Below are positions 18,980 to 54,663 of a stretch of 64,000 nucleotides of DNA, piece after piece. The DNA comes from Saccostrea cucullata (Eukaryota), in contig NW_026925056.1 in NCBI RefSeq assembly GCF_032062105.1, forward strand, positions 124,001 through 188,000. The letters run 5' to 3'. Below the pieces are notes generated by a model that saw only the letters and a list, made by a program, of their open reading frames with translations, did no database searches and was not told the DNA's origin. Made by a program: the position numbers and the translations under genes. Every line of letters begins with the position of its first letter. Position 1 is the first letter of the stretch.

Positions 18980-20194
18980 CTAGTTATTTAGGATATATTT
19001 TGCTTTCATTTTCCCATCTTTAATATCAATGTTGAAAAGCTTGACGAGAATTTCTTTCTGCCAGATCCTCACCAGTCTATGGAGCATCATGTGACTTGCT
19101 TGCTTGTATGCGACGGACAGCTTAAAACATCCCAAACTCACCGACTGCCTCACTTCCCCAGCTTTGATGGTGGTGCGCACACAGCCAGACACACTGTTTC
19201 CGCTGACATTGACATGGCGGAAATGGAAACATACTTTTGTTTTGTTGCTTCCGATTTGAACTTCCTTGCATACTGGTTGTGAACTGTTCACTGAAAAACA
19301 ATCAAAAACACGAAGAAATGAAACTTCAATGTTTCAGTTCGTAGTCAAGAGCAAAGAGTATCTTTGGTACTTTTCTATCTGCATTACCTGGCACATCTTG
19401 TTCTATTGCAGTTTTAGCATCAATTTCTAATTTGGTTGCAAACATTTGCTTCGTTTTGTCGTACTGGAATTTGCTGCAAACTGTGAGCATTCAAAATAAA
19501 AAAAAGTGTGTTTTGATTTGTTCCAAATACAACGCACTTAAATCTTAAATGACATTGTATAATTTCCTACAAGACATTAATAACATACCATAATGGTTCG
19601 TTTGGAAGGCCCTAAGGGTCACATTTCGACAACAATTGCAAGATCCTCCTGAACACACACAATGTTCTCCGACATCGTAGGGACTTTCAGCGCTGTTGTC
19701 TTAGTATAAAGAATATATATATTTAAGGAGGCTAGGGGGTCAACAGATTATTTTTTTTTATCAACCACCAGATATAATTTTTTTTTAGATATGATATCTT
19801 GATCTGTCAACTATCATTTGGCAAAGAAAAATTTCAAAAATTTTAGTTTTAAAATTTGATCATTTTATTACATCTTTATATGGAGCCCTTCTTCTAAAGG
19901 AGATCAAAAAAGTTTAAAAATGGCCACGACCACCCAGCCTCTTTAAATACATGTACTGCATATTTTCATGAATTCAAAAAGAAACGAAGAAAACATTCTC
20001 AAATAAATTTAAGATATGATATAGCCTTGCCACCTACAGTGATATCAGAATTAAAAAGTTGCTTTCCATTTAAAATTTGGTTTTTTCCCCATAAAGTTTC
20101 AAAGATGGTAAAGATTACCTATTGCTGAAATACTGTTTTCAGCTTTAGTAAGCACAATAATGAAAATTGCCAAAGTAGCTGCTGCTCCTGCCAT
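18980..20194 (-). CDS. DUF4773-type secreted Cys-rich protein, copy A (196 aa)
   Basis: Exons 20194-20119, 19699-19589, 19480-19388, 19290-18980; three phase-1 GT-AG introns; 591 nt open. Signal-like MAGAAATLAIFIIVLTKA; HCVCSGGSCNCC...VC...PVC...VC...SGC...LGCF is the 10-Cys DUF4773 pattern. Confidence 0.85.
19727..19942. mobile_element. Kolobok-like MITE in intron 1 of copy A
   Basis: TTAA flanks; imperfect TIR GGAGGCTAGGGGGTC / GACCACCCAGCCTCT. Confidence 0.65.
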
Positions 20195-20635
20195 TTTCAG
20201 CACCAGACTAAAATTTAAAACCAGAGATGATGAGTAATAAATAAAAAATCATGTGATCAATGAAGGAAATTCTAGTATATGATGTAAAATACTTCCAGCT
20301 TAACCTTGCTCAGCATTAGCAAAAATTGGATTGAAAAGATATTTAGATATAATTAATATATAATTTTAAAGACTTTTAATTTGTTTGAACGCAGTATAAA
20401 TAAATAAAATTGAGTCCTTTGTGTCCATTATAATCTTTTAATGTGCTTTTTTTTATGTTAAAAAAAAAGACCTTGACTTTATTCAAATTATTCTGGATCA
20501 GGCTTAGGAAATACCTTCAGTTTGATTTATCAGCAACCTTTGTGTCAAATGGTAAAGTTCTAGATCTGCTTTTTCAAATTTCAGAGTTGTTGGTTAAGCG
20601 CAATGTAATAATTTTTACCTTATTTAAATTGATTC

Positions 20636-20775
20636 TGTCGTCAACGTGGCGCAGTGGTTAGAGCGTTTGCTTTAGAATCACGGAGTAAGGATTGTTCCTT
20701 ACATCGCAAGTTCGAATCCCAATGCAGGACGCAGAGACTTTGTCCTTCGGATGAAACCGTATAAAACGAGGCAAG
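20636..20775 (+). mobile_element. 5' part of tRNA-derived V-SINE
   Basis: A box gtggcgcagtggttagagc, B box gttcgaatccc, V-domain start gtccttcggatgaaaccgtataaaacgagg. Confidence 0.75.
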
Positions 20776-21159
20776 GAATCTTACTTCCTCTCTAACTAAT
20801 ATATACAGTGTATGTTTAAATTGAATAGTTTTCATTTTTAAGTTGTTTACACTTTTCTTCATTAAGAATTTCCGCTTAAAACCACAATTAGGAAAAAGTA
20901 TTATTATTGATATTACAAGTACTTATCATCGCGTTCACTTTCCTGTTTACTCTAATTAGAAAAATTTCACGTGATTGTATAATTGTAATTAAAGTGTGCA
21001 ATTGATTACGAATATGTATATTGTGCATACTTATAGTTATATCAATATCCTGCATCGCCGTACCCTTTAAGTGTTAGAATAATTAATTCCCTTTATACCA
21101 AACCTCAAATATCCCTAGTCTTGAAATTTCATTAGTATCATGATCAATATTTGATCTAA

Positions 21160-21295
21160 TGAAACATATGGAGATAACGAACAGTATACAAGATCATAAG
21201 TCCATTTAAAACAATACAAAATAGGAGCAGAGCAAACACGGACCTCCAGAACATCAGAGGTTGAATCAGGTGCCATGGAGGAGTGAGAATTCTCC
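21160..21295 (-). mobile_element. Naiad-type PLE 3' terminal fragment
   Basis: Reverse complement ctcactcctccatggcacctgatt..ggaggtccgtgtttgctctgctcctattttgta matches 6728-6800. Confidence 0.75.
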
Positions 21296-22334
21296 TTTTA
21301 TTCACGTAGTTACTATTTTGAAATTTTAGAATTATCATTTAAATCATTTCCATCGTTGAACTAAGAAGATGACAAGGTATCATATGAGCTACATGCTGAG
21401 AAACAAGCCACTTAAAAGAACTGCGTTTCCCCGATTTTCGGATCTAATTGGTTTGGGGTGGAATGATCGAAAACAAAGGCAGTAAGCACTGAAAACATGT
21501 CTAGATTAGCAATCCCCTTCCGACAAGTAGTTGCGTCTCAATATGAGTGAAAAAAAAAAATCGAAAGGAAAACAAAAAACGATAACAATTTCCTGCTTAT
21601 TGTCAATTTATTCACGACACTATTCTATTCTTTAACTTTTGAATGGGCCCACACCTCGTATCTTAATCTAAATCACAATTGCATTAGTATGTGGATGTGG
21701 CTATGTTTATAATATCACAATTTCGATTTGAAATCTTTGCAATAGAAGACTTGTTCTACAAAGAATAAAGAGGGAGATGGGGTGGGAGATAGCTCATTTT
21801 TTTCCAATACCTACGATTATCATTATTTATGATAGTCTAAATATAGGCCTAGACTCATTCTCACATTGTTAGCTCCACCTCTCACGGATATTTTTATCAT
21901 CTTAAAAACCAATCAATGGCATGCAGGTATACAAGACTATTTTTTCTATATACGCCGAGGAGAACAGTAAGGAAAAAAGTAGAAATATTTTTTTGCATCA
22001 CAAAGTCTTAGATCATTTTCACATTTCATTCATTTTGGCTCCAATGTGACAAGCAATATAATAATTAAATATAAATGCTAGTAAACCAAAGCGAAATTAG
22101 GGTAAGATATAAAAGCAACAAAAGCGTCCAAAAAAATCAGGACCTAGTATCGAGTGCAATCCTCCTATGTCTTCGAAATGTCCCGTATACCTGATCAGAT
22201 CAGCTGGTTAAGACCCTCGACTAGTTTGATCTCACCTCTGAAATAAGTGAAGGTCGTCTTTAAAGCCATTTTCACAGATTTGTGTATTTTTTCTTTAGAT
22301 CCGTTCTGATTTCAATATTGTGCTCAAAGATCTA

Positions 22335-52330: not shown

Positions 52331-53156
52331 TGTGCAAGAATTTAACCAACAAAATTAACAAACGCAGAGGAGTAAACACTACTCTTAAAGGACCTATCGA
52401 TTATCCACTTTATGATTGTCAAATTACCGCATAATCTAAAGTTCAAGTGTTTACACTTTATTTACATGTAATTTTATGAAAACAAGATGACGAATTTTTC
52501 ATGTATGATTCACATTTAACTCCATAAGAAGAAGAAGGGGCAAAAATGTTATTTGTTAAATTCTTTTTATACACATTTACATATGGGTTTGACGGCCGTA
52601 GAAGAACCACTAACAATGTGACATTTTGTAAATTAAAACGGATTTTGTAATGAAGCCAACACTTATAAAATTTCTATTGTATGTCTATTTTAATTTATTA
52701 ATTGAATTTAAAATCAGTGAGTTTTAGAAGTCATTAACTAATTCCACTAGTTTTACAGATAATGAGCAGTTCGGCAGCTTAAAAAATCACACAGCAAATA
52801 TAGTTTTGCACAAAGCAACGGTTGCAATCAAAACTGTAAATAATGTCTAGTCTATATGATATTTAATGTATCCTTATAATATTTTTCAATTAAAAATAAA
52901 ATATTACCCTTTCCTTATAGATTAGCATCCACAGAACTATTTTGCTTCGCATCATTCTGTTTCGATTATTCTGTCATCTTATGATCAAACAAAATAGTTT
53001 GCAAAGACGGGGCACAGTATGTAGTACCAATTCTTTCAGATACTAAGAAATCATGTTATATACAGCTATTGTTCATGAGAAACCCAACCTGGGAGAACTT
53101 GTCGTTAGGTTCAGAGTGTCTTGAAATAGAATATGACTGCAGATGGCCATTGGTAG

Positions 53157-53254
53157 AGGCCTGTTCAACAGAGCGAACGTACGCGAACACTCGCCAAAAT
53201 TTCTTATACCTTCAATAGAAATTTTCCCGAGTGTTTGCTCTGTTGAACAGGTCT
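53157..53254. repeat. Short inverted-repeat MITE-like element
   Basis: cctgttcaacagagc..aac / gtt..gctctgttgaacagg arms around a ~55-bp spacer. Confidence 0.55.
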
Positions 53255-54174
53255 AAGGTATGAACATGTAAGTTAATGTGTTCCATTTATCTTGAAAAAA
53301 AAGTTAAAATTAACATTATCTGTAATACCTACTGGTCTGAAAATGTTATTTTACGACAATAATTAAGAAAAAACGCTGAAACGATCTCACTTTTTCGATT
53401 TTGTAAGCAATGCAAGACGCTGAAGAATGACACATGAATCGCTTATATGTTTGTAGACGTCCATGGATATTATACTACAAACTGATGACAGAACATCTAA
53501 AGAAACATACTAGCAATCTCAATATTGCTACATGTATTTTTCACCAAAACAATTATCTGTGCCGAAATTTAATCTGCACCGATATATATTTATACTGCAA
53601 TATGGCATTTTAGAGGTATTGGGCATCGAAAAAATAAACTTTGTAATTAGGACCGAAACCAACCTAAATGGTCAATTTTTTTTTTGAAATTTCACTATTT
53701 GGTGACTTTTTACAATAACTTTCATCTACTTGACTGAATAAGAAATCTCTAGGGCAGAAATACAAAAAATATTGGAAAAAATGTGCCAATAAGGTCCTAT
53801 AGTAAAATTTGACAACTTTTGAGATGGTCCCCAAAGAAATTGGGGTGGTTAACATTCGATTTTTTAGTATTAAAACAATAAATATAACAGTAGAAACCAT
53901 TTAACGAAAATAAATTTATTAAAATCCCTAAGGTAAAGTAATTAGACGCGGTCTCTAAAAAAGAATCCATGAAATTGAAAGTGTGACGAACGGACAGACA
54001 GAAAGTCGGGAGACAGGGGAAGAAAGTGAATGAAGAAGTGAAATCAGACTTGATTATGTACATATACATGCCACAACCATGCAGATAGGTTTGTAAAGAT
54101 CTAGAGTAATATGATATTACTAATATCATTCTTACTCTTCCCTTGTCAATCTTGCAGCAATATTTCTTGTATTC

Positions 54175-54218
<44 letters not shown>

Positions 54219-54454
54219 CATTTATTCCATCTTCAAAAAGTTGTCCTCTCCCGACAGACTGGCTTAAAATGACCCGACACTACACTTTTTTTTTTACACG
54301 TACGATGCTATCATGCTATTATCAAAAAATATTTTATGATACAATCATTTAAGTTTATCTGATATATCATATTTCTTTTGCAAACTGAACAAGGCAGGTG
54401 GTAAAAATCATATTAAATATACGTTGATCATTAAATGGTTCTTATTCTTCGTTT

Positions 54455-54663
54455 TTAATTCCAATTGTTTCCCCAAAACAGAAGCTTCTTTTCAGCAAAA
54501 TAGGGCATCCTGAAGCAACCAAGACGAAAGTTGATTTTCTGTAGCATAAATAATGTCAATTTCAGGCACCCACTGATGTCAGTTGACTCAATCTTGATTT
54601 CGGCCACTTCTAAACAAACTCGGATGTACGCGGACAGGTCTTTACATGCTTTTGGATTCTGAA
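54455..54663 (-). CDS. Terminal exon of DUF4773-type copy H (E/F subfamily); upstream exons not found in window
   Basis: Polypyrimidine tract and AG acceptor (TTTAG ending at 54664); open phase-1 exon VQNPKACKDLSAYIRVCLEVAEIKIESTDISGCLKLTLFMLQKINFRLGCFRMPYFAEKKLLFWGNNWN*. Confidence 0.8.

Follow-up and report, generated by a model that had tools for sequence, protein, structure and literature searches.

Does the tandem array of DUF4773 (PF15998) genes in the hooded oyster, Saccostrea cucullata, record the rapid diversification of a system of small secreted proteins, as an earlier note on this DNA proposed, or is it a conserved gene cluster? The array lies on contig NW_026925056.1 of assembly GCF_032062105.1, within a stretch of 64,000 nucleotides (nt; positions 124,001 to 188,000, forward strand) that is referred to here as the window. 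Coordinates are those of the window unless they carry the prefix L001, L003 or L005-L008, which denote other fetched stretches; L001 continues the same contig past the window end, and an L001 position plus 64,000 gives the window equivalent. We find that the locus is a tandem cluster of a known domain-of-unknown-function family, and that the earlier note overstates its diversification, its novelty and the risk of an annotation gap. The reading we prefer, with a probability of roughly 0.5, is that of a conserved ostreid DUF4773 cluster of subfunctionalised paralogs, the products of which are predicted to be disulfide-stapled, extracellular, non-catalytic binding modules.

Gene organization and family membership

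Eight DUF4773 copies, designated A to H, lie on the minus strand, all in the same orientation. Translated on that strand, the interval from 18,980 to the window end contains the motif GCF[KR] eight times, in agreement with the eight same-strand copies first counted, and the motif CxCx4CxCC six times. Exon models were built by frame-by-frame inspection combined with splice-site scans. They give seven intact genes (A, C, D, E, F, G and H) and one pseudogene (B), one intact gene more than the six originally listed, because H is completed by exons 1-3 that lie beyond the window. The copies are as follows, with product lengths in amino acids (aa):

20194-20119, 19699-19589, 19480-19388, 19290-18980, minus strand: gene A, intact, 196 aa; PF15998 matches in exon 4 (23.3 bits) and exon 2 (17.2 bits)
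22305-23058, minus strand: pseudogene B, C/D subfamily; 38-54% identity to C/D exons by tblastn, no Pfam match
27177-27123, 26769-26629, 26547-26455, 26347-26109, minus strand: gene C, intact, 175 aa; PF15998, 89.2 bits
29734-29683, 29548-29408, 29320-29228, 29126-28888, minus strand: gene D, intact, 174 aa; PF15998, 82.3 bits; spliced reads
34813-34750, 34349-34221, 33987-33895, 33708-33491, minus strand: gene E, intact, 167 aa; junction reads (from E or F)
46001-45938, 45527-45390, 45164-45072, 44898-44681, minus strand: gene F, intact, 170 aa, younger duplicate of E; splice models
51007-50935, 50440-50294, 48994-48902, 48594-48233, minus strand: gene G, intact, 224 aa, long C-terminal tail; exon 4 scores 39 bits, the top exon score in the array
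54663-54455, minus strand: gene H, intact, 166 aa, last exon; end of database protein P0045
L001 4449-4386, 4076-3942, 3159-3067 (window-equivalent 68449-67067), minus strand: gene H, exons 1-3, outside the window; GT-AG phase-1 junctions, 93-nt exon 3

Each intact gene has four exons separated by three GT-AG introns in phase 1. For A, C, D, E, F and G this holds for 18 of 18 introns, and each coding sequence (CDS) has a length that is a multiple of three. Exon 1 codes for a hydrophobic N-terminus plus one base; exon 2 holds a block of five cysteines; exon 3 is exactly 93 nt long and opens with a cysteine codon; and exon 4 holds four cysteines and closes with the GCF motif. The mature protein has ten cysteines (five from exon 2, one from exon 3 and four from exon 4), arranged as the CxCx4CxCC block followed by five single cysteines, the last of them in GCF, and this pattern is present in all seven intact genes. 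The exon models and splice check therefore reproduce the architecture first described for the array. The hydrophobic N-terminus found in every first exon resembles a signal peptide by a hydrophobicity heuristic, as had also been claimed, and the product can be described as a putative signal peptide and, after it, a domain of ~115 residues that holds the ten conserved cysteines.

Membership in DUF4773, for which a hidden Markov model check had been proposed, holds at the level of whole products: D scores 82.3 bits (E 4.9e-23) and C 89.2 bits against PF15998, for which the gathering cut-off is 27 bits. With last exons alone, seven of the eight copies (all but B) match at 21.8-39 bits; those of C, D and G each exceed 27 bits unaided, and those of A, E, F and H score 21.8-26.5. 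Weak N-terminal PF15998 matches were seen in exon 2 of A, C and D, and the H product has a precomputed PF15998 match and is included in the family alignment. Across 83 family members, the ten cysteine columns are invariant or at least 90% conserved.

The array had been thought easy for automated annotation to miss. However, our model of D agrees residue for residue with P0001 (RefSeq LOC134267958, an uncharacterized protein of Saccostrea cucullata), and those of C and H are identical to database proteins P0003 and P0045 (XP_062606137.1, LOC134267946), respectively. At least three genes of the array are thus already modelled in public annotation.

Divergence, selection and conserved gene order

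Divergence was estimated pairwise by Nei-Gojobori counts, summed exon by exon, as synonymous divergence (dS) and the ratio of nonsynonymous to synonymous divergence (dN/dS):

E-F: 95% aa identity, dS 0.19, dN/dS 0.13
C-D: 64% aa identity, dS 1.49, dN/dS 0.15
E/F-H: 58% aa identity, dS 0.85-0.86, dN/dS 0.30-0.31
D ortholog, S. cucullata versus S. echinata: 79% aa identity, dS 0.59, dN/dS 0.21
A ortholog, S. cucullata versus S. echinata: 79% aa identity, dS 0.30, dN/dS 0.35
G ortholog, S. cucullata versus S. echinata: 80.5% aa identity, dS 0.56, dN/dS 0.19

The ratio lies between 0.13 and 0.35 in all six measurable comparisons, whether of paralogs or of orthologs. Judged by these values, selection in each measurable lineage is purifying, of moderate constraint, and not diversifying. 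The subfamilies recognized earlier (A; B/C/D; E/F/H; G) are recovered, with 64% identity between C and D, 95% between E and F, 58% between E/F and H, and 23-35% between subfamilies. In the latter comparisons synonymous sites are saturated, which points to an old rather than a recent radiation.

Gene order leads to the same view. Orthologs in S. echinata occupy a single chromosome at 38.387-38.556 Mb where, in the direction of the genes, G-like copies are followed by two E/F-like genes, C/D-like copies, the D, C and A orthologs and an LPMO_10 gene; the latter lies directly downstream of A in both Saccostrea species. The S. echinata A ortholog (P0143) has the same length and N-terminus as A and is 79% identical in aa sequence, and the G ortholog (P0153) has 224 aa, as does G, and is 80.5% identical. 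In Ostrea edulis the order is partly kept, with G-like units followed by an E/F/H-like gene. Sharing of gene order across oyster species suggests that the subfamilies are old and constrained and, on divergence and order together, we take all four (A; C/D with pseudogene B; E/F/H; G) to be old. With dN/dS at 0.13-0.35 in every measurable pair and gene order conserved among oysters, the description of the family as diversifying and fast-diverging does not hold. In a quick maximum-likelihood tree, in which long-branch effects are possible, A, C/D and E/F/H group together on long branches, so far with no member from outside the oysters (SH-aLRT 96), and G-type genes, together with a Crassostrea virginica relative, fall nearer the rest of the family.

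These results bear directly on the proposal that the genes encode rapidly diversifying secreted immune effectors or recognition proteins, kept under positive selection by a host-pathogen arms race. The array does include a pseudogene and a younger duplicate, and S. cucullata and S. echinata orthologs are just 79-80% identical in aa sequence. Expression of relatives also fits: the C. gigas DUF4773 gene G14414 has been reported as a top-10 marker of macrophage-like haemocytes, and a DUF4773 relative that is a top secreted transcript of the highly secretory locust pleuropodia is co-upregulated there with lysozymes. An arms race is nonetheless unlikely, given the low dN/dS in six of six measurable comparisons, the clear orthologs of D, C, A and G in conserved order, and the saturated synonymous sites that make the radiation old; moreover, the C. 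gigas haemocyte marker may or may not be a member of this cluster.

Transcription and splicing

RNA-seq data over window positions 28850-34840, comprising three oligo-dT runs labelled as the same species and contigs from a single metatranscriptomic run, contained each of the six junctions predicted for D and for E (the reads of the latter may be from F, its near-copy), so that the spliced reads proposed as a check on the models were found. Junctions of D appear at 29126/29228, 29320/29408 and 29548/29683, with a handful of reads per run at exon 1-2 and about 100 at exon 2-3. Those of E appear at 33708/33895, 33987/34221 and 34349/34750, with hundreds of reads per run, and reads start at 34818, five bases before the E ATG. 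The skipped stretches all end in CT..AC on the plus strand, which is GT..AG on the strand of the genes. All reads over the E exon 2/3 junction (33987-34224) bear a 9-nt insertion that matches F and not the reference E, and the source of the reads mapped to E may be F or a divergent allele of E. The data show transcription, and splicing in accordance with the models, for the D type and the E/F type at least.

Coverage was also seen between D and E, at 30850-31049 and 31650-31849, with a depth of up to about 75. Reads in this intergenic region include opposite-strand joints between ~30566 and 31860-31908 and many loose ends, and the covered stretches look like a transcribed inverted-repeat transposable element with many genomic copies.

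Predicted fold and mode of action

The AlphaFold2 model of D has a mean predicted local distance difference test score (pLDDT) of 79, with values of 88-96 over residues 41-150. D and the S. echinata G ortholog give the same all-beta fold of nine consecutive antiparallel strands, with domain pLDDT above 90 in both. The N-terminal helix is modelled at a pLDDT of ~50-60 in D and 74-79 in the G ortholog, and the G-type model adds a long C-terminal helix. We describe the domain as a predicted nine-stranded, up-and-down, all-beta sandwich.

Exhaustive structural alignment placed the N-terminal domain of FAIM (PDB 3mx7) at the top for both models, with Z scores of 8.7 and 8.9, root-mean-square deviations (rmsd) of 3.0 and 2.8 A and all 90 residues of 3mx7 aligned in each case; the C-terminal domain of FAIM (PDB 2kw1) came next (Z 7.7 and 7.0). 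Foldseek against the PDB returned nothing at E <= 0.001, the FAIM match having an E of 0.068, and the family profile searched against all PDB sequences gave no match at E <= 10, so no sequence homology to FAIM was detected. A search of the ESM Atlas by shape recovered an arthropod DUF4773 protein (TM 0.61) and otherwise weak DUF868- and DUF1579-type models; a search of the same resource by features, with PF15998 excluded, produced no usable match. The likeness to FAIM is a resemblance of models, and homology is not implied.

The beta structure might instead belong to a small-ligand carrier such as a lipocalin, FABP or haemophore, with a ligand of hydrophobic or haem type enclosed in it. The lower-ranked structural matches (Z 5-7.3) do include haemophores, TbpB/NHBA-type barrels, FABP and lipocalins, and Foldseek gave an FABP match with a probability of 0.54. 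Such matches are, however, of high rmsd (4-7 A) or partial, within the noise range for searches of this kind. Those to calycin-type carriers (lipocalin, FABP) cover 52-62 residues at Z 5.0-5.5 and do not extend to a closed barrel over the whole domain. Since, in addition, the top match, FAIM, is a sandwich and not a closed barrel, and carriers are seldom built as 5-6 tandem domains, a carrier role seems distinctly improbable.

In the conserved-cluster reading that we prefer, the five cysteines of the first hairpin would each pair with a cysteine on one of five later strands, and this 5+5 pairing would make the extracellular module very stable. The proposed role of the proteins is that of non-catalytic binders outside the cell, in secretions or haemolymph, and the paralogs would be subfunctionalised binders rather than arms-race effectors. 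Relatives with 3-6 tandem domains per chain, in mussels and sea stars, suggest that the target may be repetitive or polymeric: a glycan, chitin or a surface. It is also conceivable, if rather improbable, that DUF4773 is a previously unrecognised disulfide-stapled, FAIM-like beta-sandwich serving as a humoral recognition or opsonin module in invertebrates; the cluster would then encode binders secreted by haemocytes or mucosa and directed at distinct targets.

Several points weigh against the interpretation of the products as stapled, subfunctionalised binders. The disulfide map derives from the 5+5 cysteine pattern and not from coordinates, and the signal-peptide calls come from a hydrophobicity heuristic only. 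Pairwise dN/dS values are compatible with positive selection at a few sites. Z scores of 8-9 lie near the upper limit attained by unrelated models and, since FAIM is cytosolic and lacks the cysteines, the fold match is silent on function. Finally, the RNA-seq reads differ from the reference by 1-8%, with ~5-8% fixed differences over D, which indicates that the sequenced animals diverge from the reference individual or lineage, as might be expected of a species complex or of very high polymorphism.

The locus overturns nothing: it holds a conserved tandem family under purifying selection, with at least three genes already annotated. DUF4773 is widespread, and its few mentions in the literature are from secretions or secretory tissues, but neither a function nor a solved structure is known for it. 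As a defined and expressed set of paralogs with checked models, oyster orthologs and a confident fold, the cluster offers a starting point for expression, binding and structural work.

Local turnover within the array

Turnover within the cluster is local and consists of the E/F duplication and the death of B; to this extent the birth-and-death evolution proposed in the earlier note stands. B was correctly called a pseudogene, having acquired stops and a frameshift and lost a splice donor and a cysteine. What remains of exon 1 (ATG at 23058) lacks a GT donor, in-frame stops at 22781-22779 and 22772-22770 fall inside the cysteine motif, an additional stop lies at 22438-22436, exon 4 contains a frameshift, and the first exon-4 cysteine is changed to tryptophan.

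E and F lie in blocks (33081-35225 and 44263-46412) that are 87% identical in nucleotide sequence, and the two genes, 95% identical in aa sequence with a dS of 0.19 and a dN/dS of 0.13, differ by a 9-nt indel. Two E/F-type genes are also present in S. echinata:

L005 15945-17215, strand not stated: S. echinata E/F-type gene, 83-89% aa identity to E and F alike
L006 13616-14982, strand not stated: S. echinata E/F-type gene, 83-89% aa identity to E and F alike

The higher identity between E and F (95%) than to the S. echinata E/F types (83-89%) suggests independent duplication or gene conversion in each species. We also considered the pair as an assembly artefact, in which uncollapsed haplotypes would be represented twice. 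The assembly is fragmented (23,869 contigs, 1.17 Gb) and oysters are highly heterozygous, but both copies are on one contig, 11 kb apart, their nucleotide identity is merely 87% with a dS of 0.19 and a 9-nt indel, and S. echinata has two such genes as well. An assembly duplicate is very improbable indeed, and this explanation was rejected. Between F and G, at 47220-47849, ~630 bp match their own reverse complement with 74-78% identity, forming a large imperfect palindrome.

Position 54663, which had been taken as the end of the array, simply marks where the last exon of H begins. Exons 1-3 of H were not found inside the window by tblastn. Database protein P0045 (XP_062606137.1, LOC134267946) ends in exactly the H exon that lies in the window, and a genome search with P0045 puts exons 1-3 farther along the same contig, extending the array to ~4.4 kb past the window end. 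A truncated copy or gene fragment, the alternative considered for H, is ruled out by these exons, which lie ~12.4 kb upstream of the last one. The intervening intron 3, of 12.4 kb, carries repeats and the remnant of a piggyBac-type transposase, and H seemed truncated within the window because transposon and repeat insertions fill this intron:

62960-63268, minus strand: piggyBac-type transposase fragment in H intron 3; PF13843, 37.7 bits
54672-54924 / 55754-56001 and 55225-55776 / 59644-60201, strand not stated: repeated segments in H intron 3; repeat matches

Other family members in the genome and the neighbouring LPMO gene

A census of the 1.17-Gb assembly with a profile of 83 family members assigned 7 of ~9 genomic DUF4773 genes to this array, which bears out the proposed local amplification, and revealed two other loci only:

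L007 2204-3343, strand not stated: DUF4773 locus on contig C438; profile match
L008 (contig C18042, 677104-680324), strand not stated: DUF4773 locus; last exon 98 bits, nearest of all copies to the family consensus

In the C438 gene, one large exon codes for a hydrophobic start, a charged stretch of ~250 residues rich in Lys and Glu, which makes for a long N-terminal extension, and then the cysteine block. An Rfam scan of the window found no RNA family. The gene next to A is the LPMO_10 gene:

~4790-11060, minus strand: LPMO_10 (AA15-like) gene; exon 8033-8347 matches PF03067, 35.8 bits

Its last exon (4796-5377) encodes a long Thr-rich, mucin-like linker and a Cys-rich end, and the gene is collinear with the S. 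echinata LPMO beside the A ortholog; conservation, at 86%, extends even to sequence upstream of the CDS. This arrangement raises the question of whether the array encodes structural or chitin-associated proteins of an extracellular matrix (shell matrix, periostracum or gut lining) acting together with the adjacent chitin-active LPMO. Its position directly downstream of A in both Saccostrea species would fit such a role, as would the co-expression of the locust pleuropodia relative with peritrophin and cuticle-degrading enzymes and the existence of multi-domain relatives. Against this, gene adjacency by itself is weak evidence, Pfam scans found no chitin-binding motif or family, and the literature naming DUF4773, PF15998 or IPR031941, beyond which nothing wider was searched, places the domain in no shell proteome. 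We consider a matrix role doubtful.

Comparison with known systems

A search of 1.84 billion cluster representatives identified 397 relatives, in oysters, mussels, slugs, a triatomine bug, spiders, a tardigrade and sea stars. Searching the literature by the identifiers PF15998 and IPR031941 gave no result; under the name DUF4773, only three papers mention the domain, one of them placing a relative in the octopus skin-mucus proteome. No function appears in the published literature on the domain, in line with what had been stated for the family. FAIM is the nearest solved shape for two independent paralog models. It differs from the DUF4773 domain in sequence (9-13% identity), in being cytosolic and in lacking the disulfides.

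The PF15998 proteins of other animals, including G14414 and the locust and octopus relatives, share with the array the domain, its ten conserved cysteines and small size, and they occur in secretory settings where seen. In contrast to these, A, C/D and E/F/H score lower against the Pfam model and form an oyster-only, long-branched clade; G and the unlinked C18042 gene are the only ones near the family consensus.

The multi-domain proteins of sea stars (Asterias and Patiria, 5-6 domains) and of Mytilus coruscus (3 domains) are built from the same domain as the array, whereas each gene of the array encodes one domain with its own putative signal-peptide exon and stop codon. In O. edulis, the public model P0007/P0160 (385-390 aa; OX387704.1, L003 1-8345) joins two G-like units in one transcript: the final exon of the first unit is spliced directly to exon 2 of the second, and a putative signal-peptide exon is skipped. 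This joined transcript is a candidate only, and may be real or an artefact of prediction. Because all introns are in phase 1, tandem genes such as these could become multi-domain proteins of the kind found in mussels and sea stars.

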